This document shows positions 3,243 to 56,831 of a stretch of DNA of 56,975 nucleotides, piece by piece. Source of the DNA: Octopus bimaculoides. Lineage: Eukaryota. The translations under genes and the position numbers were made by a program. Within the stretch, counting starts at the first letter, position 1, and the number at the start of each line of letters is the position of its first letter. The stretch spans positions 55,258,480 through 55,315,454 of the forward strand of contig NC_068986.1 of assembly GCF_001194135.2 (NCBI RefSeq), written 5' to 3'. The notes beneath the pieces were generated by a model that saw nothing but the letters and a program-made list of their open reading frames with translations, searched no databases and was not told the origin of the DNA.

Positions 3243-3310
3243 TGCCGAAACCCGGGATTAAACCAGGGACCTTTAGATCTTCAGTCTAACGCTCTCCCAA
3301 CTGAGCTATT
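3243..3310 (-). tRNA. tRNA-Phe(GAA), C56>T B-box variant; 5' end in N gap
   Basis: Same sequence but GGTTTAATCC instead of GGTTCAATCC. First five nucleotides fall in the gap starting at 3311. Confidence 0.75.
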
Positions 3311-4810
3311 NNNNNNNNNNNNNNNNNNNNNNNNNNNNNNNNNNNNNNNNNNNNNNNNNNNNNNNNNNNNNNNNNNNNNNNNNNNNNNNNNNNNNNNNNN
3401 NNNNNNNNNNTTGTAGACATGGCTTTTAATATAAGGCGACACATTGAGAGTGATTTAATCAATTGTATCATCCTCGGTACTTCAGATTTCATTGGCCCCA
3501 GTACCCAGAGTTACCGATGAAAGCAGAACGTAAGTACTGCAAAGAAATGTTTAAAGTGACTCTCTACGAATTCATATGTGCTCCTTTGTGTGTGTGTGTG
3601 TGCGCGCTAGTGAAGGAGAGAGTGGGGGAGGTGTGTGAGCAAGTAGAAAAGAGTACTCCGTAATGACATTGCACGAGAGACTAAAACTTCAGAAATCGTT
3701 ACTCCGAGTTTTCCATCTGTCACCTTCGCTCAACAATATATATGATTNNNNNNNNNNNNNNNNNNNNNNNNNNNNNNNNNNNNNNNNNNNNNNNNNNNNN
3801 NNNNNNNNNNNNNNNNNNNNNNNNNNNNNNNNNNNNNNNNNNNNNNNNNNNNNNNNNNNNNNNNNNNNNNNNNNNNNNNNNNNNNNNNNNNNNNNNNNNN
3901 NNNNNNNNNNNNNNNNNNNNNNNNNNNNNNNNNNNNNNNNNNNNNNNNNNNNNNNNNNNNNNNNNNNNNNNNNNNNNNNNNNNNNNNNNNNNNNNNNNNN
4001 NNNNNNNNNNNNNNNNNNNNNNNNNNNNNNNNNNNNNNNNNNNNNNNNNNNNNNNNNNNNNNNNNNNNNNNNNNNNNNNNNNNNNNNNNNNNNNNNNNNN
4101 NNNNNNNNNNNNNNNNNNNNNNNNNNNNNNNNNNNNNNNNNNNNNNNNNNNNNNNNNNNNNNNNNNNNNNNNNNNNNNNNNNNNNNNNNNNNNNNNNNNN
4201 NNNNNNNNNNNNNNNNNNNNNNNNNNNNNNNNNNNTAGTGAAGGAGAGAGTGGGGGAGGTGTGTGAGCAAGTAGAAAAGAGTACTCCGTAATGACATTTT
4301 CGTTATCATAATTAGAATAATGAAAAGAGAAAAAATATCACTAAGACGGTTAAAAAAAATGGAGTGGTTTTCTTTTAGGAAAAAAAGTTTAAATGGTGAA
4401 TAAGAAATAGATAGAATCCTCGAGAGATACTAGGCTCGTGGTGCAAATTGGGTGAAAGATATAAGCAGAGATAGTTTGAGACTAATGGAAGTCGTAAAAA
4501 AGAAACATGAGGCTTGGACAAAAATTGGTAGTAAGTCGCTAAAAATTGATGTAATATATTACATTTTTATTAATATTTAGCAGAAACAACAGAGTGACTC
4601 AAAGTCCAAGACTTTTGTGCGAGGACACTTATCACCATACCTGTAATAAAATACATATCCAGAGGAATGAAAGGTAGTTGGGATCCGGGATGAAATGAAT
4701 GCAAATAAAATCATTGAAAAGAACAGTTGTTCAGGCCTAAACTAAAACATGAATGAAAACAGAATATGAAGAACGAAAAAGAAAAAAAAAAAAGCAGACC
4801 AGCCACCGGA

Positions 4811-4883
4811 TGCCGAAACCCGGGATTGAACCAGGGACCTTTAGATCTTCAGTCTAACGCTCTCCCAACTGAGCTATTTCGGC
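4811..4883 (-). tRNA. tRNA-Phe(GAA)
   Basis: Identical to the 2266 copy, with oligo-T terminator. Confidence 0.97.
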
Positions 4884-6757: not shown

Positions 6758-6830
6758 GCCGAAATAGCTCAGTTGGGAGAGCGTTAGACTGAAGATCTAA
6801 AGGTCCCTGGTTCAATCCCGGGTTTCGGCA
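6758..6830 (+). tRNA. tRNA-Phe(GAA), divergently oriented copy
   Basis: GCCGAAATAGCTCAG...GGTTTCGGCA, identical to the 2266 and 4811 copies; T10 at 6849-6858. Confidence 0.97.
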
Positions 6831-18130: not shown

Positions 18131-18174
18131 GTCACGTGACGTCTGCGCACACCACGTTGCCTCTCTCTCTTTCC
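18131..18174 (+). promoter_or_regulatory. RPLP2 core promoter: E-box palindrome plus TCT/5'TOP tract
   Basis: GTCACGTGAC at 18131-18140; pyrimidine tract CCTCTCTCTCTTTCCT at 18160-18174. Confidence 0.75.
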
Positions 18175-18234
18175 TGCATCAGAATTCCTCCATAAGTGAC
18201 ATAACACGTTTTCGCGTCAATCTAAGTCTTAAAA
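18161..18234 (+). other. RPLP2: RPLP2 non-coding exon 1 (predicted)
   Basis: Starts in the TOP tract and ends at aaaa|GTAAGT (GT 18235-6). Splicing to 23781 gives ...aaaaaATG. Confidence 0.7.
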
Positions 18235-18881
18235 GTAAGTTATTTTTCCAAGAAAATTCATATTTTTTTGTACCAACTGGTTAATGTAAAGCTTTTCTTC
18301 CGTCTGATTAATATTTTAGATGTTCGTTATGACTATTAAGTTTATGAAACGAAATTCCTTTCTTCCTCACGTTGCTATCATGGAGCACAGCCATGCTGTC
18401 CACACTATCTGCATTTATTAATGCGTGGTACACAACTTGTTTGTTTTCGATAGAAATTATAAAACTTCCTATGAATTCTTAATACAAACTAAATTAATAA
18501 AATACTATATTTTATATATAAGTGAAACTACATTTAGTTCTTAAATTTTGCTTAAAAATGAATCCCTTTTTTATAGATTTTAAAACTTAAGGATGGTACT
18601 ATTTCAAGAAGAGTGGTCTTAAGGATTACAGCTTTATATATATATATATATATATAAAGTAGTAGTAATCTATAAGTTGATATGCATTCACATTCATTTC
18701 GATATTAATAGCGAATTCCATGGAAATATCTGGAAATGTTAGTAGTACAGAGACCACGTGGCTCATTCAAGATTTGTTGAAATTAACATCACTGCTTCGA
18801 AGTTTTTGTTCAACTTATCTGTGTGTAAACAAAATACAAACGTACATATAAAATAAAGTTATTCTTAATGTGAGCTAAAAT

Positions 18882-19013
18882 TTGCACTCCTCGACTGCTT
18901 TCATTCTTCATAGATTGTGAGTTACTGTTTTAAAGTGCTATATTAACTCGGTGATCCTGCGTACACCAACTGTCTTTTATTCAGTCTGGTGCCCGTTAAG
19001 ACACCAGACAAAT
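18882..19013 (+). ncRNA. H/ACA snoRNA copy A
   Basis: Hairpin gcact/agtgc, H box ATATTA 18940-5, second hairpin with pocket cctgcgt / ccgtt, ACA at 19008-10 located 15 nt from the pocket; conserved in copy B. Confidence 0.85.
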
Positions 19014-19527
19014 GTGTATATTTAAGTCTGCTTTTACGCATGAGTTCTAATCCTATTTTGATGTCAGTATGAAATGATGTGAAAATAGCTAATTTAAAAG
19101 TCTACTAACAGTTATGACTATTTAAAGCCATTACCTTTAAAAACCTAGGTGGTGAGATCGAGATCATCTGCGTAGTTTGCCATTTGAAGCATACAGGGTC
19201 TACAACGCTGTCCGCAGTATGATTTCACTGAATTACGGATTTAGGCGCTACCCCGTTTGTTACCGCCTGTGTAAATAATGTGTTTTATGAAGTAAAATAT
19301 CTCGTGTTTCGTAAATCCATCTGAACTCGTACATAAACTGAATCGAGAACTTATCTGTACTGTTTTTAATATGGAATTCTCGAAATAAACTAGCAATACA
19401 GACTTGCCATTCTTTGTTTTACAGCCATCTGCGAAAAGGCGCCCGAACTAATATATTAATGGTTCTTTGTCCTAACACGGTTTTGGTCGTGTGTTACTAT
19501 TGTAAAATATATTTGGATAAACTTTTT

Positions 19528-19690
19528 GGTACTACTAAAGCAGCGCGGACCCGGTCGCGCGTCCGCGCTAGCTAGTCGTGAGTGGTCGATACTAACCCTA
19601 AACGTATTCATTTGCACACGCGGGTTAGGGTTAGGATCGACCACTCAAGACTGGCTAGCGCGTTCGGGTTCGCGCTGCTTTAGTAGTACC
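19528..19690. mobile_element. Palindromic MITE with TTAGGG-like internal repeats
   Basis: ggtactactaaagcagcgcg ... cgcgctgctttagtagtacc; internal ctaaccctaa and gggttagggttagg. Confidence 0.8.
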
Positions 19691-20567
19691 CTCATTTTTC
19701 GTTGTTAGAGCAATTAAAATTTCTCATAGAATTAATGTAATGTTGCTTTCCGTTTGAAGGTTATCCCCATATGAGCACTAATCTAACAGAGATGTGATCA
19801 AAGACGTTTCAGTTATTTCTGAATTTTTAATGTGTGATTTGTAGGGAATTTGGCTGCTATTTCTAAACAAGTCGCCCTCTTCTCCATAATCAATTGTCTA
19901 GATTACTGGAGTTAGTGATAGCATGTGTTAAAGCTAAACAAGCACATCACTACTATAGTGATTTTATTGCGCGTCTGACTGATTATATTCTTTATGTAGA
20001 ATTGTAGCCTAATTAGACATCTGTGATCTTCAAAGAGAAGAATCTTAACTAGAGATAATACATAATCCAGATCATGACGAAGCCAGTGGACTTCCACAGT
20101 TTCTTTTTTTGGTGACCGTATACGCTTCAAGCCGTCCCAATTCATTTTTTTACACCAGTTTGTTTGTCAAATAAGTGTGGCCTTATGAAAAAGTTGTTCA
20201 CCTGAGACAGGCTGGTTTGAGTTCAATCCCACTGAACAGCAGTGTGCAAACTACATTAAGCCCAGCATGCAATGTCGGGTAAACTGAACACCCAGTTTTG
20301 CTCAAGTGATATTTGCCCTGTAATAGTAGTCTTGTCACTATTGTCGTTGGAATTATAGTTTATGTCTGGACTAATTTTATATTTATTTTTAGGCAAGGGA
20401 AATGGTATTTAAGATAATGCTTAGCGTTACGTCTTTATGATTTTAAATAACCACGGAGTGTAGAGCTGTTGTGTTGAAATCTGGGGTTGTAGTGGAGCTA
20501 AGACATTAAAACTTATAACTGAAAGTGTAGCATATGGGTTTGGGTTTCCATAGCTGCCATTTCTAGA

Positions 20568-20649
20568 CAGTATAGATGATGACTTCGAATATTTTCTGAG
20601 AGTATGATTAATATTTTATTATGCTACTTTACCACCGTCTGATATACTG
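20568..20649 (+). ncRNA. C/D snoRNA copy A (target unassigned)
   Basis: 7-bp terminal stem cagtata/tatactg; C ATGATGA 20576-82, D' CTGA 20596-9, C' ATGATTA 20604-10, D CTGA 20639-42. Confidence 0.88.
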
Positions 20650-21248
20650 CTATGGCATCTGTGAAACATCTTTATAACTCATTTAACTGATTTAGAAAGG
20701 CAATTGTAACTGATTATATCTAGGGGGGGGGGTAGTAATACTGTACAGTGATGCTCTTAGATTCTTTGCAAATTGGCATTTAGAAGTGTGAAAATTGTCT
20801 ACCATGTTTTGAAAGTTGGGAGTGCCTTGAACAGCTTTAGTGTTTCAAAGTATAATTTAGAATTGTAGTCATTTGTTCTTACAGTTTTTGTATAGGTGCT
20901 GTATTGCAATGAGTCGGGTTTTCACAGGTGTTATGAGTAAACCTATTTGTGCTATCCTCAAAGACATGGCTAATAAACCTGAGCAAGCAGGACATGTTTA
21001 TGTTAGTACCAGCTACCAAGATTAATGGGTTACTTTAAATTTCTTTGTTAAACTATATAAGACATGTATTTTACTTGTAAATTTGTGGAATCTGTCTTAC
21101 ATTTTGAATTCAGAACAAACATCATTGTACATTGAGGTGTTTTCTTTTAAAGCAGAAAGCTATAGATAGATCTGTCTTCACAGGACACTTCTCAGCAATG
21201 TCAGTACTTGTAAATTGTGAGCATGTTTGAAGATGCTATATTCATTAA

Positions 21249-22727
21249 CCCTTTCGTTACCAAAGCCGCCCGAAAAAAATTTTGGTTCGTTTGACCAAGC
21301 CGCCCGTAATCACCTATTCATATTTAAATGAGAATATCTGAGCAAATCTCGTTAGTACATTCGTGAAAACACGTGATTATTTGTGTAAACAGTTCAGCTA
21401 TAGTTTTGTACGACGATCAACATGTTTTTTTAATTTTGTGAATTTTGGGAGATTTTTTTCCAAATTTGTTCCTGTTGTTTTCAATATTTGTAATCCTGAC
21501 AAAAAAAATGGATACGAATTTTATTGTCAAGCAGCGAGTCAGAATTCGAAGGATTTTCCGTTGAAGACCTTGATAAATCTAACTCTGTAACCGAAAAAAA
21601 AAAGCACGTGGTATTTGATAATGAATCTGAGGTTTCATTTTCCGAAAATGAAAGCAGTGAACTCGAGAGCTCCGATAATAGCGATAAAGAGAATGAATTA
21701 GTACCTGAATGGAGTGAAAATTTAAAAACTCCTTCTTTCAGTGATTTTTCTGAAGAAACTGGACCAAGTCATAGTCTTACCCAGGAGAGTAAAGCTTTAG
21801 ACTTCTTTTTGCTTTTTCCGATGTGCCTATTTGAATTGATTACGGCGGAAACAAACCGTTACGCTAAATGTAAACAAAGCGTAAAAAAGGNNNNNNNNNN
21901 CCGTTACGCTAAATGTAAACAAAGCGTAAAAAAGGATAGTTTGAGGTTTCCCATAAACTTGAATGAAATTAAAGCATATTTTGCCATGAATATTATTATG
22001 TGCATTAGAAAGTTACCTAGAATAACAAATTACTGGAGTAGTGATGAACCCTTTGGCGACGAATACGTCTCAAGTATAATGACGAGGATACGGTTTTTAA
22101 AATTGACTCGATATCTACATGTAATAGACACGACCAGTACACCAGTTCGTGGAAAACCAGACTTTGATCCCTTATTTAAAATAAGACCCCTCATTGACTG
22201 TGTTCAAAGCACATATAAAACAGTTTATAGATAAGGATATGGTGGGCTATAAAGGCCGAGTGCGTTTTCAACAGTATATGCCAGGAAAGCGCACAAAATG
22301 GGGGATCAAAGTTTGGAAAGGATTTGTGAATCAAATACTGGGTACTGCTCTGGATTTTAATTTTATACTGGCAAAAGAGACAGTAATAAATCCAGTAATG
22401 TGCACAACTCTTCTATAATAATATTTTGTTGTATACCCAATTGAATATTAGCTAATAACCCATTTTCTATAGCGATGTTTGAACAAAAATTTAAATAATT
22501 TTATATTTTGTTGAATTTACCTGTAATTAAAGTCACTTTGTGACAAAAATTTTGGTATAGAATTGGTTGAGAACCTTTCGTTAATTTATCTTCCAAAAAT
22601 CACATTAATATGTTGATAAATAAAAAAGTTAGAGTTTAATGAAACCAGCCTAAATTTATGATTATGTTAGAAATTAATTGAAACACATAAGGGGTGTAAT
22701 TTGGTTAGAAATATGGTAACGAAAGGG
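21249..22727 (+). mobile_element. Internally deleted piggyBac element
   Basis: TTAA TSDs (21245-8, 22728-31), TIR CCCTTTCGTTACC, acidic N-terminus and PGBD-like transposase fragment (DPLFKIRPLID, YKGRVRFQQYMPGKRTKWGIKVW) with deletions. Confidence 0.92.
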
Positions 22728-22788
22728 TTAAGGGGTTCTAAACAAATGTACATATTAAAATAAAGTTATTCTTAATGTAAGTTAAAAT

Positions 22789-22920
22789 TTGCACTTTCTC
22801 GACTACTTTCACTCTTCATAGATTGTGAGTTACTGTTTAAAAGTGCTATATTAACTGGGTGATCCTGCGTACACCAACTGTCCTAATTCAGTTAGGTGCC
22901 CGTCTAGACACCAGACAATA
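22789..22920 (+). ncRNA. H/ACA snoRNA copy B
   Basis: Paralogue of copy A: gcacttt/aaagtgc stem, H box 22848-53, ACA 22915-7, same pocket sequences. Confidence 0.85.
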
Positions 22921-23369
22921 TATGCATATATCTCAATCAGCTTCTGTGAAAGATTCATTATTGTCAGTCAGAAATTATGTGAGAAAACTTTGCGTTTTTG
23001 GAATAGTTTGTGATTGTCATTGAAAGCTCAGAATGTTGGCTTTTACTTGCATGCTACATCATAGAAGTTACATTAGTAGTTATAATATATAAGCATTATA
23101 ATTGAGGTACACATTGTTGGTACCTAGCTAGAGATTTATAGCACCTGTTATTCAGGAAATGCATTAAAATGTGTAGCTGTTCTGTAAAGGTGTAGGCTCT
23201 GTTCATATCGGCTACTTCATTATTTATAATATATGTTGCAATGCTTACAATGATGAGATTGTGAGGTAAGGTTAATCTATTTAGAAGTAAGTTATAGAAA
23301 TATAGATATCATTAAGTACAGAAAAGTGCTCAAATTTATATTTCTGTTTACTTCAGCTGTCTCCACTAC

Positions 23370-23464
23370 TGCCATTTAACAGATGATGACTTTGATATTG
23401 TTCTGAGAGCATGATTAATTTTCTATATTGCTACTTTACCACCGTCTGATGTACTTTTATGGCA
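23370..23464 (+). ncRNA. C/D snoRNA copy B (target unassigned)
   Basis: C 23383-9, D' 23403-6, C' 23411-7, D 23446-9; outer stem tgccat/atggca; D guide identical to copy A. Confidence 0.85.
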
Positions 23465-23781
23465 AGCAATGTGGAGATTTAACTGTTTACAAAATAAACT
23501 GTTCAATTAATAAATAATTGTTCCAAAAACCTCTTAATTTCAATTTACGTTGCACAATAAGAAGCCTAAAATGCATTTTTTGTTCAATTTGTATTAGCTT
23601 CAGTTAGTGTGTGTGGCAAATTTTTGCTGCTTTTGTAATTTTTTTCATTAGAGAAGTTCTGTTAGGGTGCATGTAATAGCAAATTAGTATTTAATGTTTT
23701 GAAAACCAGGCATCAGATGAGTAAGTGTAACATAAATTTGCCTTATTGATAGGCGTGCATTTTCTTTTATCACATTGCAGA

Positions 23782-23953
23782 ATGCGTTACGTGGCCGCTT
23801 ATCTCCTTGCCACCCTTGGGGGTGTGAAACAACCAACTGAAGCTGATTTGGAGAAGATTTTAGGCAGCGTTGGTATTGAGGCCGAAGCCGGTAAAATGAA
23901 GAAAGTCATCTCACAGCTAAAAGACAAAGACCCAGCTACTCTCATCAAAGAAG
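23782..23953 (+). CDS. RPLP2: 60S acidic ribosomal protein P2, coding exon 1
   Basis: cag|aATG; MRYVAAYLLATLGG...LIKE+G; donor GT at 23954. Confidence 0.98.
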
Positions 23954-24380: not shown

Positions 24381-25770
24381 CCATCATCATCATCATCGTT
24401 TAACGTCTGCTTTCCATGCTAGCATGGGTTGGACAATTTGACTAAGGACTGGGGAACCAGATGGCTACACCAGGCTCCAATCTGATTTGGCAGAGTTTCT
24501 ACAGCTGGATACCATTCCTAACGCCAACCACTCCGAGAGTGATGTGGGTGCTTTTACGTGCCACTGGTGCTCTGGTAACGATCACACTCGGACGGTGCTC
24601 TTAGTGCTCCACTAGTACGGGTGCCATCACGATTTCGCAAGCCGAGTTTGATGTTCAATGAAAGTGACGTTGACGTGGGTGCCGGTCTACAAATTTAGTT
24701 TGATTTCTATTGCCTCAACAGGTCTTCACAAGCGGAGTTTAGTGTCCAATGAAGGAGTGTTACACATAAGTGGGCTGGCAGAGGCCTTGGATTTTGGTCT
24801 CACTTGGCTTGCCGGGTCTTCTCACGCACAGCATATTTCCAAAGGTCTTAGTTACAAGTCATTGCCTTGGTGAGGCCTAATGTTCGGAGTTCATGCTTCA
24901 CCACCTCATCCCAAGTATTCCTGGGCCTGCCTATTCCACGGGTTCCCTCAACCGCTAGGGTGTGGTACTTTTTCACACAGCTATCCTCATCCATTCTCTC
25001 CACATGACCATACCAGCGCAATCGTCTCTCTTGCACTCCACAACTGATGTTTCTTAGGTCCAACTTTTCTCAAGATATTTACACTCTGTCGGGTATGCAC
25101 ACTGGCATTACTCATCCATCGGAGCCTACTGGCTTCTTTCCTTGCAAGCTTACGCATGTCCTCAGTAGTCACGGCCCATGTTTCACTGCCATGTAGCATG
25201 GTTGTTCGTACACATGTGTCATGCAGTCTGCCTTTTACTCTCAGTGATAGGCCCTTTGTCGCCAGCAGAGGTAAGAGGTCTCTGAACTTTGCCCAGGCTA
25301 TTCTTATTCTAGCAGCTACACTTGGTCACCCAGATATTGGAAGCTATCAACTACGTCCAGTTTTTCTCCCTGGAATGAGACTGGTTGTTTTCTGCACATT
25401 TTCAGTGTTTATTGCACCTGAACATCTACCACATACAAAAACTAACTTCCCAGTTAGCCTTCCTTTGATATTGCTGCACCTCTTATGTGTCCATAGCTTG
25501 CATTGGGTACATCTTATAAAGTTTCTACCTACACCTTTTCTACAGATCGAGCAGGGCCATCTACCTGAAGGGGTGTGTGTTTTGTCTACCTTCCTACTTA
25601 TTTGGACTTTGGTTTTAGCTAGGTTGACTCTAAGGCCCTTCGATTCTAGTCCCTGCTGCCACACCTGAAACTTCTCCTCTAGTTCTGATAGTGACTCAGC
25701 AATTAGTGCAAGGGTATCCTGTGTTGAATTTGGTTTGCATAAAGGTTGGTTTAGGGGGTCTTTACTCAAA
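24381..25770 (-). mobile_element. 5'-truncated RTE-clade LINE, antisense in RPLP2 intron 2
   Basis: RT C-terminal part, Cys-rich CSICRK...CTQCKLWTHKRC...CGRC insert, MLHGSETWA and RRLRWYGHVERM motifs; (GAT)n tail at about 24381. Confidence 0.9.
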
Positions 25771-25985: not shown

Positions 25986-26081
25986 GTCAGCTGAAGCTTG
26001 CATCTGTCCCAAGTGGAGGTGGTGCTGCTGTTGCTGCTGCACCTGCTGCCTCTGCTGCAGCACCTGCAGAGAAGGCTGAAG
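25986..26081 (+). CDS. RPLP2: RPLP2 coding exon 2 (Ala-rich hinge; missed by the ORF track)
   Basis: cacag|(G)QLKLASVPSGGGAAVAAAPAASAAAPAEKAE+G|GTGAG; phase matches the neighbouring exons. Confidence 0.97.
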
Positions 26082-26224: not shown

Positions 26225-26295
26225 AAAAGAAAGAAGAGAAGAAAGAGGAGTCAGAAGAATCAGATGATGACATGGGCTTTGGTCTCTTTGACTAA
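26225..26295 (+). CDS. RPLP2: RPLP2 coding exon 3
   Basis: ctacag|(E)KKEEKKEESEESDDDMGFGLFD*; total CDS 339 nt (112 aa); ATTAAA at 26323-8. Confidence 0.98.
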
Positions 26296-47631: not shown

Positions 47632-47703
47632 GTACTAATTGTGATGATTAGATATCGCCCCAGTCTGAATTGTGTGACTGAATCGATATAACTGATTTAG
47701 TAC
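47632..47703 (+). ncRNA. SNORD31: C/D snoRNA, SNORD31/snR67-like, copy 1
   Basis: Stem gtactaa/ttagtac; C 47641-7; guide tatcgccccagt; D' 47665-8; D 47692-5. Confidence 0.9.
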
Positions 47704-48586
47704 TTGACTTTATAAGGAATATATGGTAGTAGAAAATGGGATGCTCTTCCTATTCAGTAAAACATTTGGTAGTTAAAGCTACTGTGGACGTTTGCATTAT
47801 GGTCCATAGAATAAAGGTGTTAGTATTGCAAATTCATCTTGAAGGTTTCTTAATATTCCTATTATCAACACATGGAAATTGTAATTGCCATTATAAGTCA
47901 GCAATTGAGGTTTTTGCTTCACTAAAATTTAAAATTTTAAAGGCTTGTAACTTTTTCATTATTTTTTCTGTAAAAAGAATTTTAATATATATATATGCAC
48001 CAGCATGACCGCAGCCACTTGGCTGAAACCCATAAATAAAAAAATATATATATACACCAATCACCTGTGTATATCACATGTTTTAATGTCCACTTTTCCA
48101 TATTTGCATGGAGAGCTAGAATTCTTTGAGGCAAATCTCCTATGACTGGATGCCTTTTATGTCATCAGCTGTCACCTGTTTCTAAGCAAGGTAATATTTT
48201 TTCCCTATGGCAAGCTTGGAGATAAACATTTTGTATAATGACATTTGTATACAACTATTATGTAATGTGAAGATAAGTGCATATATATATACATGACTTG
48301 CATCTTTCGGTTTCCATCTGTCACATTCCCTCATGGCTTTCATTGGCCTAGGATGCCTGTGTTAAATATTCCAGTTAAACATTTAAAGTATTAAGTAGTT
48401 AAATGACTTTTGTCAAAAACTCATTGCTGTGGCCTGTGGCCCCTTTTATGTACCAAAGGAATCCATTACTCATTGTTTCAGGTTATACTCTCTCTTTTAT
48501 ATAAGGTGGCATCAAAGATGCTATTAGTTAAATCAAAATATTCCCGTAAAAACTAGATGTTTTCAAAGCAGTGTAAGATCTTGTAA

Positions 48587-48664
48587 GTGTACTTATTGTG
48601 ATGGATAAGATATCGCCCCAGTCTGAATTATCTGACTGAATCGATATCACTGATTATAGTACAC
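48587..48664 (+). ncRNA. SNORD31: SNORD31-like copy 2
   Basis: C GTGATGG; guide intact; D' 48623-6; D 48650-3; stem gtgtact/agtacac. Confidence 0.85.
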
Positions 48665-49464
48665 ATTACAGGAAGTATTACACTGGACAACAATTTGTTT
48701 TTTTAATTTTCTGTAGTGTGAGGGTTTTTTTTTTACTGATTCTGTCTTTGTGCTATTTCAAATCTGTAATTTGTTTTGCTTTCCATGCTCTAGTTTTCTT
48801 GCAATTTGAAGATTAACTTTTTATACGTTTATTGTTAAATTTGACATTGAGATACATATATCCTATTTAAAAAGAATTGCCAATTATTTTTACAGATCTG
48901 ATCAGGTCTTCAGGTAGATATAGATGTGTGAATAATCCTGATGGCTTTTACATACACACATGAAGCAGGTAAGAACAAATATGCAAGGCTTTTTTTCTTC
49001 AAGTTTAAAATAGGACATTGCTAGCATAATTTCGTTATATCTATATTCCACAACACATAAATACATAAAATCGGAACAGGCACAGACAAGAACAAGCACA
49101 CACACACAACCCATTAGTTTTCTTCTCATCCCATTTCAGCAGCTGTCATGGAGATATCCGAAGTGAACTGTCGAGTTATATCGAGGAATGCCACTATGTC
49201 TGGTTACTTTGCTTTTATTTGTCAAAAGCATGGTTTTGATAATTGAATGTTTGAGAAGGTGCTTGCTGCATACATTTAGTGCAACAGCAGTTTACTGATA
49301 AATTTCTTCGTAACACTTGTCTACATAGCAATACCATTTGTAACTTTGTTGAAGAAAGTGAAGAACTGGTAGTTGTAGTCCAAGCTTGTATTGTTGCAAA
49401 GGACATCTGTCATAGATTTCATCCATAATCTCTGCATTCCATATTGTGACTAGCATGCTATGAT

Positions 49465-49528
49465 TGTACTTAATGTGGTGAGTTAGATATTACCCTCAGT
49501 CTGAATTGCTGTAGCTGTTTATAGTACA
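49465..49528 (+). pseudogene. SNORD31-like copy 3, degenerate
   Basis: C GTGGTGA, mutated guide attaccctcagt, D box lost. Confidence 0.75.
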
Positions 49529-49982
49529 TGTTACAGGAAATATCAGCTCACATAGCATAGTCATGAAGTGTTTATAGTTTTCAATTAGACATTCAACCTG
49601 TTTGTAACTGCAGAAGTGTCTTGAAATATCTTGTGTGGGTAGGGTGCTGTTTTTGAGAATCGTTAACTTCGTGATTTCTAAAAGATTTGAAACTGGTGCT
49701 AATGTTTTAGTATTTAGGTTTCTGGGCACTACTTTAAATGCAGAGGTCTCAATACATCATTGTAAAGATATGAAGAGGAGGGTTAGTTTTTAGGGTGTCA
49801 TTACACATCCACACAGCATACATTTAAAATGTTCTGTATGTAATACCTGTATTTAAGTAGTACCAGTTTCTGTTTGTATTTTATTCCTTGACTGTGCTTT
49901 GGACATATTGAGAAAGATCACTGAAGTTGGTTTTCGATATTAGATTAATGACAAACTTTAAACTCTGGATGTTTTGAGGTTA

Positions 49983-50057
49983 GTATAGCTTTGTGATGAA
50001 CAAGATATCGCCCCAGTCTGAATTGTGTGACTGAGTTGATATAACTACATTTAGTAC
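49983..50057 (+). pseudogene. SNORD31-like copy 4, D box mutated
   Basis: C 49993-9 and guide intact; D box reads CTAC. Confidence 0.7.
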
Positions 50058-50214
50058 AAAGTTTAATGCTTTGAAATCTTGTACAGGAATGAGTCAGAAA
50101 GTTGTACAATTTTTTGTAAGAGACGCATTTTCCTAGGAAATTATTTGATATTTGGTACAGATATAAATGGCACATATGCTTTTGATCTTTAATTATTGAA
50201 TTTTTTTTTTTTTT

Positions 50215-52030
50215 TTACCTCTCATCTAAATGAATAAGTGGGACAATAAAAGAATTGGCTGTTTTTACTGGGAGTCCATCAGAAGCTAAGAGCTGTAATT
50301 GAGTTCCTTGTTGCTGAAGAAACTCTTGTTAACATTCACAGAAGACTAGAAAACGTTTCTAAAGATAAGGCTTTACAATATAGCAATGTGTGGAGATAGG
50401 CTCACTGATTAAGAAAACAGTTCAGAGAGAATTGAGAAAATTCAAGCTTAGCAGACATGTCTTGTAGTGGCCACCTATCAACTTCTGCTAACCAGGAAAA
50501 AACAGATGTTTTAATTAGTTGATAGATGCATCAACACCTGGAGATAGCCATGGCAGTTTTCACAGCACTATTGAATCACTTGGATATTCAAATGTGCCTG
50601 CTAGATACCAAAACAACCAGCAGATGAGCACAGGACTGAAAGTGTTAACTGTTGTGCTGAAATCCTTGAACTAAGTAAAAGAGATAAAAACTATTTTTCA
50701 CTTGGATTCATCGTTATGAACCAGAATGAAAGTGACAATCAATGGAATGGTATCATGCAATGTCAGCTGAAATAATCGTGCTGTCTTTTGGGGTGTTCAT
50801 AGTGTTAGTTGGGTCAATTTCTTACAAAGAGGAGAAACCATCAACTCTGAAGCATACATTTCGACCCTTAACCCTTTCGTTACTTAGCCGGCCGAAAAAT
50901 TTTTTGGTTCATAAGACTAACCCGGCCGTACCCATTGTTATTTAAATGTATATTTGAATCCAAATTTCGTTAGTAAATTCGTTCAAACACCTGATTTCAC
51001 TTTGCAAACAGTTGAGTTATTGTCTCTGACATTATTTGGCGTGATATTTGAACTCAGTGAATTTTGGAAGATTTTTTTCCACATATTTTGCGGCGTTAAT
51101 TTTTTTCAACAGAAGATATGGAGATATCGAAGAAAAGAATGAACGAGCTACAAAAGCACGTGGTGAACGATAATGAATCGGATATTTCTGTATCCGAAAC
51201 TGAAAGCAGTGAGGATGATTTTACACCAGAAAAAGATTTTAAAAATATTTTTATTAACAATTTTTCTGAGGAAACGGGGTCTACCCAGTCTTTCTCAGGA
51301 AGCGAAACCTTTAGACTTCTTTTTCATGCTTGTTTGAAATGATTACTGCGGAAACAAACCGTTAAGCAGAATGTAAACAAACCGGAAAAAAAAAGATAGT
51401 TTGTGGTTTCCTGCAACTGTAGATGAAATACAGGCATTTTTTGCCATAAATATTATTATGGGTATTATTAGACAATTACCCAGAATAACAAATTACTGGA
51501 GCGATCAGGAACCTTTTGCCGATGAATATATTTCCAGTATTATGAATGAGTACAATTCGTGAAGCTGAACCAATATTTACATGTGAGAGACACTAGCAGT
51601 ACCCCCCCCCCGTACGTAGAGAACTTAGAGACAAAAATTATGCAATAGAATTGATTAAGAACCCTTTCTTTAATTATGTTCCAAATATCACATTAATATG
51701 TTGATAAATAAAAAAGTTACAGGTGTTTAATGAGACTAGTCTAAATTCATGATTATTTTAGAATTTAGTTGAAACTCATGAGGGGTGTATTTTGGCCAGA
51801 AATATAGTAACGAAAGGGTTAAAAGGTTACAGCAAAACCTGCCGAATAGACTAAATCTGTTCAATGATGGGCCTAGTTCAAGCTTCAGAACAAGGGAAGC
51901 AATCACCTTTTTTTGAGTGGACAAATCTGTCCCTCCTTGCTCACATAGCTTTGCAGCTTCAGACTTCCATCTCTTTGGCCCAATAAAAGAGACACTGAGA
52001 GGTAAACATTATGGTGATGATCAAGGAGTC
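50215..52030 (+). mobile_element. mariner relic split by piggyBac
   Basis: RAVIEFLVAEE..., WIHRYEPE; ETINSEAYISTL|KRL reads through the TTAA; SDFHLFGPIKETLRG. Confidence 0.75.
50872..51818 (+). mobile_element. Deleted piggyBac, related subfamily
   Basis: TTAA 50868-71 and 51819-22; TIR CCCTTTCGTTAC. Confidence 0.88.
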
Positions 52031-52235
52031 ACTTGGATATTCAAATGTGCCTGCTAGATACCAAAACAACTAACAGATGAGCACAGGACTGAAAGTGTTA
52101 ACTGTTGTGCTGAAATCCTTGAACTATTGGATTCATCATTATGAACCAGAATGTTGTCATCAGCAACACCATCATTATCACCTTTGGTCATACCCTTCCC
52201 CAATTATATTGGGTTGTAACATTTTAACTTTATTG

Positions 52236-52308
52236 GACTAATTGTGATGAATAAGATATCGCCCCAGTCTGAATTGTGTGACTGAATCAATATAACTGAA
52301 TTTAGTAC
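52236..52308 (+). ncRNA. SNORD31: SNORD31-like copy 5
   Basis: C 52244-50, guide intact, D' 52269-72, D 52296-9. Confidence 0.88.
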
Positions 52309-52774
52309 ATGTTAACTATAGAAAGGTTTCACAGCAAGAGAAGACAAGTTATTGTAAAGAATTAGCTGTGTTACCACCCTGTGGAGTTTTATGAAGTTGG
52401 ATTATATGCCCTCATTCATAGGTGTAATACTGCCATTGAAAGACGTAACGACTGTTCAGAAGTAGGTATGTGAACCTGCGATAGATAGTTATAATAGTTG
52501 TACAATTTGTTTCATCGTGTTCTTATTTTTATATAATAAAACTAATTGCATTACTTTCCGACTCACTAATGGTTATAGATAAGGGTTGTCTCTATCTGAA
52601 TTGTTTTACTCAATTGTAATTGTTGACTGTACTGCCTAGTTATTATAATTTCAAGTTGCAATTACATTTGTAGGTATGCCTAGACACTGTATTGAATGAT
52701 AATTTTTTGGTTATTATTCTAAATGAGATCATTTTAACTCTCATGACTATATTTCTAGCTAAAAATACTCTTAA

Positions 52775-54095
52775 CCCTTTCGTTACCATATTTCTAACCA
52801 AATTACACCCCTTATGTGTTTCAATTAATTTCTAACATAATCATAAATTTAGGCTGGTTTCATTAAACAATAACTTTTTTATTTATCAACATATTAATGT
52901 GATTTTTGGAAGATAATTTAACAAAAGGTTCTATACCAAAATTTTTGTCACAAAGTGACTTTAATTACAGGTGAAAACAGGTAAATTCAACAAAATATAA
53001 AATTATTAAAATTTTTGTTCAAACATCGCTATAGAAAATGGGTTATTAGCTAATATTCAATTGGGTATACAACAAAATATTATAGAAGAGTTGTGCACAT
53101 TACTGGATTTATTACTGTCTCTTTTGCCAGTATAAAATTAAAATCCAGAGCAGTACCCAGTATTTGATTCACAAATCTTTTCCAAACTTTGATCCCCCAT
53201 TTTGTGTGCTTTCCTGGCATATACTGTTGAAAACGCACTCGGCCTTTATAGCCCACCATATCCTCATCTATAAACTGTTTTATATGTGCTTTGAACAGTC
53301 AATGAGGGGTCTTATTTTAAATAAGGGATCACAGTCTGGTTTTCNNNNNNNNNNNNNNNNNNNNNNNNNNNNNNNNNNNNNNNNNNNNNNNNNNNNNNNN
53401 NNNNNNNNNNNNNNNNNNNNNNNNNNNNNNNNNNNNNNNNNNNNNNNNNNNNNNNNNNNNNNNNNNNNNNNNNNNNNNNNNNNNNNNNNNNNNNNNNNNN
53501 NNNNNNNNNNNNNNNNNNNNNNNNNNNNNNNNNNNNNNNNNNNNNNNNNNNNNNNNNNNNNNNNNNNNNNNNNNNNNNNNNNNNNNNNNNNNNNNNNNNN
53601 NNNNNNNNNNNNNNNNNNNNNNNNNNNNNNNNNNNNNNNNNNNNNNNNNNNNNNNNNNNNNNNNNNNNNNNNNNNNNNNNNNNNNNNCGGAAAATGAAAC
53701 CTCAGATTCATTATCAAATACCACGTGCTTTTTTTTTCGGTTACAGAGTTAGATTTATCAAGGTCTTCAACGGAAAATCCTTCGAATTCTGACTCGCTGC
53801 TTGACAGAATAAAATTCGTATCCATTTTTTTTGTCAGGATTACAAATTTTGAAAACAACAGGAACAAATTTGGAAAAAAATCTCACAAAATTAAAAAAAC
53901 ACGTTGGTCGTCGTACAAAACTATAGCTGAACTGTTTACACAAATAATCACGTGTTTTCACGAATGTACTAACGAGATTTGCTCGGATATTCTCATTTAA
54001 ATATGAATAGGTGATTACAGGCGGTTTTGGGCGGCTTGGTCACATGAACCCAAATTTTTTTCCAGGCGGCTTTGGGCGGTTTGGTAACGAAAGGG
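52775..54095 (-). mobile_element. Deleted piggyBac, near-identical to 21249-22727
   Basis: TTAA 52771-4 and 54096-9; same TIR and internal sequence in reverse orientation. Confidence 0.92.
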
Positions 54096-54293
54096 TTAAT
54101 GCACTTTAGTTAATATAACTAAGAACTTAATGCTTGTGACATTTTTTTTTTCTTTTGAATATGGTGCTTGGAATAAAACATGTTTACAGTAATCTATTGT
54201 GAAATTATACGTTGTCATCAGCAACACCATCATTATCACCTTTGGTCATACCCTTCCCAAATTATATTGGGATGTAACATTTTAACTTTAATG

Positions 54294-54367
54294 GACTAAT
54301 TGTGATGAATAAGATATCACCCCAGTCTGAATTGTGTGACTGAATCGATTTAACTTGAATTTAGTAC
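54294..54367 (+). ncRNA. SNORD31-like copy 6, weakened
   Basis: Guide G>A (tatcaccccagt); D box reads CTTGA; lies in a roughly 190-bp block duplicated from copy 5. Confidence 0.65.
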
Positions 54368-55845
54368 ATGTTAACTATAGAACGGTTTCACAGCAAGAGA
54401 AGACAACAGGTATATTTAATATTATTTGGTATTTGGTCAGGTACATTCATTCTATAATTGGGAGTACTCTTAGTAGGTATCTTTGTGTTCAGGTTCGTGT
54501 CTTTGTTTTAGAACTGTAGTTTGAAATAAGGCTGCTAAGTCTTTGGGAATTTGAGAGGTAATTGGACCATTCATTTAGAACTGTTGCATTCAAATTATCT
54601 TTTTAAAGCTGAATACTTTCAAAAATTTTTGATTGTGCTCAAATCATTTTTCTTTTTAACTATAAAGTTTAGCTTTGTTCAAAAGAGATATTGTCCATAA
54701 ATTGATATTTTTTTAGTTTAAATTGTACTCGTGTGTCAGCATCTACATAGAGAATATAATTTAAATCTATTTTTGCAGATTCAAAAGACACTATGGCTTC
54801 TCCATGGAAAAGTTGCATGAATGCTCTGAATGAACATTGGAAACCTATTTCTGATTTTGGCTTATGTGGAGGCAGCAGATATGGTACTAGGAATGAGTCA
54901 AACCAAATAGACTGCATACTAGGGACAAAATATGACTCTGAAGAGTGTACCACTCAGCATAGACTAGTGATTAGTGATTTCAGACTACGAGATGCAAGAC
55001 AGGATAATGAAGGTAAGGATATTGACCAGATGTTGGTGCAATTGGGAGTTTCCTATGAGAAACTTCCTGTAAATATAGAAAGCAAAGAATATTAAGTTAT
55101 GAGAATCGAGCATTGATTTATTCAGCTGTACATTGTTGAAATGCTGGTGTTATCTGATAAGGTAGATCTTGTGCTCTTCACTTGCATAATTAATCAGCTT
55201 TTTAATGAAATTTTCCAGAGATATCTGTTTTCGATGGTATGTTACAATTACATTGGTAAAACTTCAGTTTGTAGTTCATAATTGTTTTCCTGAAAGATTT
55301 TAGAGTTTCTTGAATAAACTGATTAAAAGTGCCACAAAAAGTTATGGGTGCTTCATTTCCTTTCATTTTAGCTTTCAGCATTTAGAAAAAGATGCATGTC
55401 CATTTTAATTTAACAAGATAAAATGTATCTGGTAAATTTCATGCAAACATGCATTTAGTAAAGTCTGCCAGGTCAAAGTGAGCCACTACATAATTATTAT
55501 CCTCATCACTGGAAAATTTCATAAAAGAAATGTGTATTTCTATGAGAGTTATAGGGAAACAGCCATTAGGCTATACCAGTAATAGGCATGTTTGATGAGA
55601 TGGTGAAGAGAGCAAATTGGACTAGCTTAGGAAGAATGGCTTTTGCGTGTGTAGTTCTGTCATCAATAAGGTGAGTATACATGAACAATTTAGAGTTAAT
55701 GCCTCACATATATTTTAGACTAAATATACATATATGAAACTATTTCTTCTAGAAATGCTTGTATTCTTTTTATATATATATATATATTACAGTAGTTACA
55801 GTTTTTGGATTCAAAATATCCTAATATTGGATACTTGTAAATTAG

Positions 55846-55909
55846 TGTACTAATTGTGATGAATAAGATTGAATTGTGTGACTGAATCGATATAACTGAT
55901 TTTAGTACA
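55846..55909 (+). ncRNA. SNORD31-like copy 7, guide deleted
   Basis: C 55856-62, D 55896-9 and stem intact; the 12-nt atcgccccagtc is missing. Confidence 0.65.
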
Positions 55910-55919
55910 TGCTTATCTT

Positions 55920-56165
55920 TGATCTTTTACTTGCTTCAGTCATTAGACTTCAGCCATTCTGTGACACTGTATTGGTCAAGTGGTGATGAGGGAACGAACA
56001 AAGGCACATGCACACAATGGACTTTCAGTTTCTGTCTACCAAATCTTCTCACAAGGTTTTGCTCAACCCAAGACATTTAGAAGGCATTTGCCCATAGCGC
56101 CACACAATGGGACTGAACTCTGAACCATATGGTTGGGAAGCAAGCTTCTTACTACACAGCCATGC
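55920..56165 (-). mobile_element. tRNA-derived SINE
   Basis: Reverse complement of the same SINE head and tail seen at 15609-16690. Similar copies at about 1340-1435, 7160-7600, 8020-8160, 11780-11960 and 44880-44985. Confidence 0.75.
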
Positions 56166-56756
56166 CCATGGGCATTGGTTTCTCCCCCTCTGATAAGTCC
56201 TATCACGATTGATTTCTACTTTTCACCTTTCTTGAGTCCTAATTAAATGAACATGAGGCAAGGAGTTGATTTAACACTTTCATTACCATCTGTCTACTGC
56301 CTTCACTTAGTTTTGGAAGTAGGGAAGAATTTAGTAAAATAGCTGGTGTTAGGAATGAAAATTAACATGAAATTGTGATGGAAGGTTTTTTAGATAACTT
56401 TATAAAAAGAGGTTGACATTCTGGAGGCAGTCCCGAGTGGTGTCAAAAAGGGTTAATTCAATAAATGTGTTTGTGTTAAAAAGTTTGAAACTCTCAAGTT
56501 TTATACTTCACTGTCAGCTTTGTACACCAGTGATATTGGGATCTATTGATTCTGATTTGTAGAGCGTTTATGTATTTCATTCATCATGGAATTAAGCTTT
56601 TGTTTGTAATGTAGTGGACCTTACAAACTCTTTGAATTGAATTTTTTCAAGTGGGATACGTATTGATAGAAAACAGGCTCACTTGTTTTTGCACTTTGAA
56701 GTAGTGACAAACTTTTAAACTACAAATGCTCTCTGGTTAGTTTAGCATCTTGATAG

Positions 56757-56831
56757 TGTACTAAAGTGATGAACATGATATCCGCCCCAGTCTGAATTTT
56801 GTGACTGAGTTGATATAACTGATTTAGTACA
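56757..56831 (+). ncRNA. SNORD31: SNORD31-like copy 8
   Basis: C 56766-72; guide ccgccccagt (10 Watson-Crick pairs to ACUGGGGCGG); D' 56792-5; D 56819-22. Confidence 0.9.

Follow-up and report, generated by a model that had tools for sequence, protein, structure and literature searches.

Two box H/ACA RNA genes in the first intron of octopus RPLP2 with a predicted pseudouridylation target in helix 81 of 28S rRNA

We analyzed a window of 56,975 nucleotides from Octopus bimaculoides (contig NC_068986.1, positions 55,258,480 to 55,315,454 of the forward strand), which carries the gene for the acidic ribosomal protein P2 (RPLP2). The predicted first intron of this gene contains two paralogous box H/ACA small nucleolar RNA (snoRNA) genes and, judging from sequence, it is reasonably probable that their RNA would guide pseudouridylation of one uridine in the loop of helix 81 (H81) of 28S ribosomal RNA (rRNA). 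The evidence comes from the boxes and fold of the two copies, the fit of the 3′-hairpin pocket to the H81 loop, and the conservation of both in related octopods.

Results

Two H/ACA copies with the boxes and fold of guide RNAs

Copies A and B (Table 1) were 90% identical over 131 nucleotides, and neither BLAST nor a covariance model found further matches in the window. Each copy folded as hairpin-hinge-hairpin-tail with a z-score of about −2.5 relative to dinucleotide shuffles, and the same fold was obtained in three species (z from −2.2 to −2.5). Among the features of the H/ACA class, we found a two-hairpin fold of about 120–140 nucleotides, an ANANNA H box, an ACA box, a pocket and an intronic position on the sense strand. 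The ACA box lies 3 nucleotides before the proposed 3′ end, and the distance from the top of the pocket to ACA was 15 nucleotides in both copies. A previous sequence-only reading of this stretch had placed two copies at 18882-19013 and 22789-22920, with an H box, an ACA box, a CCTGCGT/CCGT pocket and the 15-nucleotide spacing, and all of these were found.

The lower stem of the 3′ hairpin is formed by CUCGGUG/CACCAG with a single bulge. It is followed by an internal loop with the strands GAUCCUGCGUA and CCCGUUAAGA (CCCGUCUAGA in copy B), whose 3′ strand starts 15 nucleotides from ACA, and by the upper stem CACC-ACUG/CAGU-GGUG with an apical loop of 9 nucleotides. The apical loops of both copies (UCAU/UUCAU and UCUUUUAUU/UCCUAAUU) lacked the CAB box UGAG, which is a feature of small Cajal body-specific RNAs.

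The 3′-hairpin pocket matches the loop of helix 81

The substrate of an H/ACA guide reads, from 5′ to 3′, as the complement of the 3′ pocket strand, U-N, and the complement of the 5′ pocket strand. The pocket of the 3′ hairpin thus reads onto AACGG-U-N-ACGCAGG, and the H81 loop of eukaryotic large subunit (LSU) rRNA is AACGG-UA-ACGCAGG. The target match was established on the LSU rRNA of other eukaryotes, represented by four proxy rDNA units, in place of octopus 28S; one metagenome scan with a 21-mer of H81 had yielded 34 eukaryotic contigs. When compared with the Rfam model of eukaryotic LSU rRNA, the 21-mer aligned to the hairpin loop of H81, which closely follows the P loop in domain V. A protein search with a spurious antisense open reading frame (ORF) overlapping H81 matched plant or unnamed entries only and gave no mollusc rDNA.

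A pocket scan over the 18S, 5.8S and 28S sequences of the proxies gave the H81 uridine as the top match in four out of four 28S sequences. This match consists of 12 uninterrupted Watson-Crick pairs (5+7) with no G-U pair, and the next-best site scored 8.5. After shuffling of the pocket with its composition preserved, 12 of 3000 sequences (about 0.4%) attained a score of 12. Copy B has one target pair fewer (4+7 bp) because the base that follows CCGT is C. The predicted duplex energies were −12.6 (5′ pocket strand) and −7.3 kcal/mol. The same sequence is documented as the stem-loop at nucleotides 4204-4228 of human 28S, the substrate of ZCCHC4 (PMC6954407). This makes the target uridine the counterpart of human U4218 (older numbering, 4188), of yeast U2641 and of E. 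coli U2272. The fit of the pocket to the conserved AACGG-U-A-ACGCAGG, as claimed by the earlier reading, holds in the proxies, and the equivalence of its U with yeast U2641 and E. coli U2272 is consistent with our placement. We infer that the RNA is expressed, that octopus 28S has the same sequence at H81 and that the uridine is modified.

Conservation in related octopods follows the functional parts of the RNA

We also compared the RPLP2 loci of O. bimaculoides, O. sinensis, O. vulgaris and Argonauta hians, which together hold 14 H/ACA copies, 11 of them distinct. Two copies are present in RPLP2 intron 1 of O. bimaculoides, five in O. sinensis, five in O. vulgaris and two in A. hians, and every copy of the relatives is in sense orientation, downstream of exon 1 and upstream of the ATG exon. 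The first copy of O. sinensis and of O. vulgaris was the orthologue of copy A (94.5% identity), and copy B grouped with their remaining four copies (92–93%). The H box (ATATTA or ACATTA) and the ACA box were invariant in position in 14 of 14 copies, and the 5′ pocket strand CCTGCGT of the 3′ hairpin was invariant in every copy of the four species. When the H/ACA structure was imposed on the 14 copies, 93% of the cells were paired, compared to 27–50% in a control with the partners slid. Changes on both sides were observed in three pairs, two of which are in the 3′ lower stem (C-G to G-U and G-C to U-A).

Identity between Octopus and Argonauta was 100% in the ACA box, 90–93% in the 3′ pocket strands, 87% in the 5′ lower stem, 82% in the 3′ upper stem, 51% in the 3′ lower stem and 43% in the interior of the 5′ hairpin, and the intron that flanks the H/ACA copies could not be aligned. 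The only alignable parts of the RPLP2 upstream region and intron between the two genera were exon 1, the H/ACA body and a box C/D snoRNA. Such a partition, with boxes and pocket conserved most, stems carrying compensatory changes and loops conserved least, is as expected for a guide RNA. Within Octopus, about 55 nucleotides 5′ of the H/ACA copies are also kept among the paralogues. One Argonauta copy (copy 1) has an A-U pair where the others have A/C at the foot of the upper stem, and this fixes the register of the pocket.

The lower stem of the 5′ hairpin and the H box are conserved, and the interior of this hairpin is wholly different between Octopus and Argonauta. The top of its pocket lies 17–18 nucleotides from the H box. 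A target scan of the 5′ hairpin against rRNA produced only G-U-rich matches which were inconsistent among copies and species. The best of these sites, about 42 nucleotides upstream of H81, was G-U-rich and found with copy A alone, and it was left unassigned. The 5′ hairpin is treated here as structural or orphan.

The host gene is RPLP2

The ORF pieces at 23782-23953, 25986-26081 and 26225-26295, once joined, encode an acidic ribosomal protein P2 of 112 amino acids, which shared 100% identity with the protein of O. bimaculoides and 88% with its A. hians counterpart. The acceptor cacattgcag stands directly 5′ of the ATG exon (start 23781). About 5.5 kb upstream of this exon, the putative exon 1 begins with a polypyrimidine stretch resembling a terminal oligopyrimidine (TOP) start, CCTCTCTCTCTTTCC (18160-18175), with a GTAAGT donor some 60 nucleotides later; about 48 nucleotides of this segment, including the donor, are invariant between Octopus and Argonauta. 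From these features we infer that the segment 18160-18234 is the non-coding exon 1 of RPLP2, and both H/ACA copies fall in intron 1 because this segment is taken as exon 1. RPLP2 intron 1, already proposed as the host, is in this way borne out by the identity of P2 and by the position of the copies between a conserved, putative TOP-type exon 1 and the ATG exon.

The 3′ 48 nucleotides of putative exon 1 (18187-18234) are conserved above what is expected for a 5′ untranslated region. A palindromic E-box-like sequence, GTCACGTGAC, was observed at 18133-18142, just 5′ of the TOP-like start.

No Rfam family accounts for the H/ACA RNA

A scan of the whole window with Rfam at gathering thresholds revealed no H/ACA family, and a scan of the copy A region (18700-19200) at E ≤ 10 did not find SNORA52. 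The best H/ACA model was SNORA19, which matched the 5′ hairpin only (17.1 bits, E = 3.6, with a gathering score of 80) and was rejected. The Rfam comparison that the sequence-only reading had recommended thus gave no H/ACA model above about 17 bits, and its caution that homology to SNORA52 was not established stands.

In the RPLP2 loci (±10 kb) of Mizuhopecten (scallop), Haliotis (abalone), Aplysia and Patella (limpet), no homologue was detected with model R1 or with a regular expression for the pocket motif, and the same four loci contained no Rfam snoRNA. One match of the regular expression in Patella (locus L042, position 5697) showed no H/ACA hairpin fold (z −0.98) and was attributed to chance. 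On present sampling, with squids and Nautilus outside the sample, the sequences point to an octopod-specific H/ACA family. The family is new, and the class to which it belongs is well known.

Modification maps of human and yeast rRNA show no pseudouridine at the target site

The complete mass-spectrometric map of human rRNA contains the fragment UAm6ACG at 4188-4192, with the U unmodified, and nearby it reports the 2′-O-methylated Gm4196, N6-methyladenosine (m6A) 4220, Um4227 and Gm4228, followed by pseudouridine 4293 (PMC6182160 supplement). For yeast, the tabulated positions are Gm2619, m3U2634 (3-methyluridine), Am2640 and Um2724, and no pseudouridine is listed at 2641 (PMC8307265). The absence of this pseudouridine from both maps agrees with the earlier reading, and the predicted target is probably lineage-specific.

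The m3U2634 modification is located in yeast helix 81 (PMC3950682), and the structure of the human 60S subunit shows m6A4220 stacked on A4219 and G4222 and in contact with H39 (PMC11724314). These two reports, retrieved by a literature search on modification of this helix, describe m3U2634 and m6A4220 there and not a pseudouridine, and a further search on pseudouridine and snoRNAs at H81 gave no papers. A Drosophila Psi-seq study reports upwards of 500 candidate sites in rRNA, for which its main text gives no usable positions. On the basis of the human and yeast maps, the predicted site belongs to a loop that is modified in other lineages at other nucleotides and with other chemistry.

Coordinates and neighbouring features of the locus

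The features of the RPLP2 locus are listed in Table 1.

Table 1. Features of the RPLP2 locus in the O. bimaculoides window (positions of the window; MFE, minimum free energy).
Feature	Position	Strand	Remarks
RPLP2 putative non-coding exon 1	18160..18234	+	Polypyrimidine TOP-like start, donor GTAAGT at 18235
RPLP2 intron 1 (putative)	18235..23780	+	Hosts both H/ACA and both C/D copies
H/ACA snoRNA copy A	18882..19013	+	132 nt; model R1 149 bits; MFE −31.4, z −2.49
Copy A H box ATATTA	18940-18945	+	
Copy A 3′-hairpin pocket, 5′ strand CCTGCGT	18956..18962	+	Pairs with ACGCAGG 3′ of target U-A
Copy A 3′-hairpin pocket, 3′ strand CCGTT	18993..18997	+	Pairs with AACGG 5′ of target U
Copy A ACA box	19008-19010	+	
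Box C/D snoRNA copy 1	20568..20649	+	C box ATGATGA 20576-20582, D box CTGA 20639-20642, terminal stem CAGTATA/TATACTG
piggyBac-type transposase relic	21524-22418	+	Pfam PF13843, E 1.7e-23; just upstream of copy B
Assembly gap, 10 N	21891..21900	.	Exact 35-nt duplication on both flanks, inside piggyBac-type relic
H/ACA snoRNA copy B	22789..22920	+	132 nt; model R1 160 bits; MFE −33.5, z −2.51
Copy B H box	22848-22853	+	
Copy B 5′ pocket strand CCTGCGT	22864..22870	+	
Copy B 3′ pocket strand CCGT	22900..22903	+	CCCGTCTAGA; following base C
Copy B ACA box	22915-22917	+	
Box C/D snoRNA copy 2	23378..23454 (about)	+	C box 23383-23389, D box 23446-23449
RPLP2 exon 2	23781..23953	+	ATG at 23782; acceptor cag/AATG
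RPLP2 downstream coding exons	25986-26081; 26225-26295 (stop)	+	Joined ORF pieces

Each H/ACA copy alternates with a box C/D snoRNA, which has the C box ATGATGA, the sequence CTGA as both D′ and D box, and a terminal stem; copies of it were also found in the Argonauta locus (L001 8082-8185 and 9144-9227) and, five in each, in O. sinensis and O. vulgaris. Together, the H/ACA and C/D genes make up a repeat unit of roughly 2 kb. O. sinensis and O. vulgaris have five such units each, and O. bimaculoides and Argonauta have two each; this difference may be a real change in copy number, or the tandem array may have been collapsed when O. bimaculoides was assembled. Conservation of the C/D snoRNA between Octopus and Argonauta was 84–89%, with an invariant 17-nucleotide D-guide, TGCTACTTTACCACCGT. 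When compared to the proxy rRNAs, this D-guide gave only a match of 9–10 bp (GGUGGUAAA, at about position 305 of the LSU rRNA). No Rfam family matched the C/D snoRNA, the best model being snoZ101 (22.9 bits, gathering score 44). Apparently this RNA, too, is an undescribed guide, and it may be an orphan.

The 35 nucleotides 5′ of the assembly gap (CCGTTACGCTAAATGTAAACAAAGCGTAAAAAAGG) recur exactly on its 3′ side, so that the gap looks like an unmerged overlap of contig ends. Removal of 45 nucleotides kept the reading frame, and the collapsed ORF matched PF13843 in one colinear stretch. This relic belongs to an insertion of about 1.5 kb (approximately 21250-22720) which is specific to O. bimaculoides and not present in O. 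sinensis or O. vulgaris. Copy A lies 2.9 kb and copy B 0.9 kb away from the gap, which affects only the spacing between the two copies. The locus in GCA_001194135.2 has the same sequence including the run of N, which leaves the gap as it is.

Five tandem SNORD31 copies (47634-56828, plus strand, 45–53 bits) lie about 21 kb 3′ of RPLP2, where their host gene is presumably non-coding, and two copies occupy the equivalent place in Argonauta (L001 20246-20692). The Rfam family SNORD31 guides a 2′-O-methylated G in the P loop, and that G is 22 nucleotides upstream of the predicted pseudouridine. Upstream of RPLP2, we observed four near-identical tRNA-Phe(GAA) genes with assembly gaps between them (545-617, 2266-2338 and 4811-4883 on the minus strand, 6758-6830 on the plus strand), a degenerate tRNA-like match within the cluster (3249-3310, minus strand) and, in Argonauta too, one tRNA (L001 3437-3509). 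Since the Argonauta SNORD31 copies have the same relative position, the order tRNA, RPLP2, SNORD31 is conserved. ORFs resembling, by eye, the C-terminal part of a non-LTR (long terminal repeat) retrotransposon reverse transcriptase were present in RPLP2 intron 2 (24848-25769, minus strand).

Discussion

In the mechanism that we propose, processing of the RPLP2 pre-mRNA would free the RNA from intron 1, and the RNA would join the dyskerin complex (dyskerin, Nop10, Nhp2 and Gar1). The pocket of its 3′ hairpin would then pair with nascent 28S on both sides of U-A in the H81 loop (5′-AACGG-UA-ACGCAGG-3′; the octopus loop is predicted to read 5′-CAAACGGUAACGCAGGUG-3′) and would present the H81 uridine to the catalytic site for conversion to pseudouridine.

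Several observations weigh against this assignment. The target match comes from other eukaryotes, and the proxy rDNAs were picked for carrying the 21-mer, so the proxy scan shows uniqueness of the site, not its presence. The guide would have to compete with the H81 stem itself (−7.8 kcal/mol). Thermodynamic folding shuts the 3′ pocket by three internal pairs (G-U, C-G and G-C), with a minimum free energy of −19.2 kcal/mol versus −12.0 kcal/mol for the open form, and the RNAalifold consensus likewise shuts it; such closure is the usual behaviour of H/ACA pockets in folding and was not counted as excluding a guide. A non-canonical A/C mismatch stands at the base of the upper stem in 13 of the 14 copies, and a U/C mismatch was found in the lower stem of several O. 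sinensis and O. vulgaris copies. Finally, covariation is thin because the sequences are from close relatives.

A rival reading is an H/ACA RNA that is genuine and expressed and does not have H81 as its substrate. The match might be a coincidence and the RNA an orphan, or the RNA might act on another RNA (an snRNA or an mRNA) or serve as a folding chaperone without modification. We regard this as unlikely, though not negligible. The shuffled pockets that equal the H81 score, the self-closure of the 3′ pocket and a 5′ hairpin that is already orphan-like, with a pocket that differs between Octopus and Argonauta and pairs only through G-U-rich matches, would fit with it, whereas the Watson-Crick nature of all 12 H81 pairs, the canonical geometry (unpaired U-N, 15 nucleotides to ACA) and the fact that the RNA is nowhere better conserved between the two genera than in its pocket bases argue for H81 as the target. 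The variant in which the RNA would guide an snRNA is at odds with the lack of a UGAG CAB box in either apical loop. It is improbable that no stable RNA is made and that the copies are a tandem intronic repeat or a regulatory sequence of RPLP2 which resembles an H/ACA RNA. Although the H/ACA copies are contained in a repeat unit whose copy number varies (2, 5, 5 and 2), and the conserved stretch among the Octopus paralogues extends 5′ of them, the alignable parts of the intron between Octopus and Argonauta are restricted to the H/ACA body, the C/D snoRNA and exon 1, the conservation is partitioned as for a guide RNA with compensatory changes in the stems, and all copies are in sense orientation.

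Human RPLP2 hosts SNORA52, and H/ACA sequences diverge fast; both points would suit a diverged SNORA52 orthologue that was kept in the same host gene and retargeted. We consider this very improbable, given that SNORA52 was not recovered even at E ≤ 10, that the best model (SNORA19) stayed far from its gathering score, and that the RPLP2 loci of scallop, abalone, Aplysia and Patella were devoid of this RNA and of any Rfam snoRNA, which argues against continuous inheritance. Like the intronic H/ACA RNAs of ribosomal-protein (TOP) genes, of which human SNORA52 in RPLP2 is an example, the octopus RNA has two hairpins, H and ACA boxes, a bipartite pocket 14–16 nucleotides from the box, a sense intronic position and the same host gene. 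It differs from them in that it shows no detectable similarity, by sequence or profile, to any Rfam H/ACA family, that its predicted target is no pseudouridine site in the human or yeast maps, and that its gene is present in 2–5 copies within one intron, alternating with a C/D snoRNA. Drosophila reportedly has intronic tandem clusters of H/ACA isoforms, which resemble the octopus locus in that several near-identical guides share a host intron and their number varies by species. The octopus locus differs from them in that H/ACA and C/D RNAs alternate in one repeat unit inside a protein-coding gene for a ribosomal protein.

If the RNA is the H81 guide that we favour, its mark would join those known in the same 11-nucleotide loop and adjoining stem of domain V, namely m6A4220 (ZCCHC4), Um4227 and Gm4228 in human and Am2640 (snR68) and m3U2634 (Bmt5) in yeast. 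The predicted octopus pseudouridine would be 2 nucleotides 5′ of the m6A site and directly 3′ of the position that is 2′-O-methylated in yeast. Unlike those methyl marks, which depend on a stand-alone methyltransferase or a C/D guide, it would arise by isomerisation directed by an H/ACA guide RNA. Taken further, the sequences would fit a pseudouridine acquired by octopods in H81, beside the peptidyl-transferase region, with a new guide amplified to 2–5 copies together with an orphan C/D snoRNA in RPLP2 intron 1, a scenario to which we give about an even chance.

In cephalopods, neither snoRNAs nor the map of rRNA modifications has been characterised to any real extent, and a full-text literature search on cephalopod snoRNAs returned only mentions in genome annotations. 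The gene class is an ordinary one, and phyla that have yet to be sampled can be expected to yield further guides with new sites. The prediction made here is that one uridine in a central, universally conserved rRNA loop is a pseudouridine in octopods and not in humans or yeast. Given that the target is identical, the octopus guide could be expressed in human cells in order to probe the effect of a pseudouridine beside m6A4220. If true, the finding would extend the list of lineage-specific modifications of the ribosome by one site, and the H81 loop would be a hotspot where lineages place different marks and where pseudouridine and m6A might influence each other.

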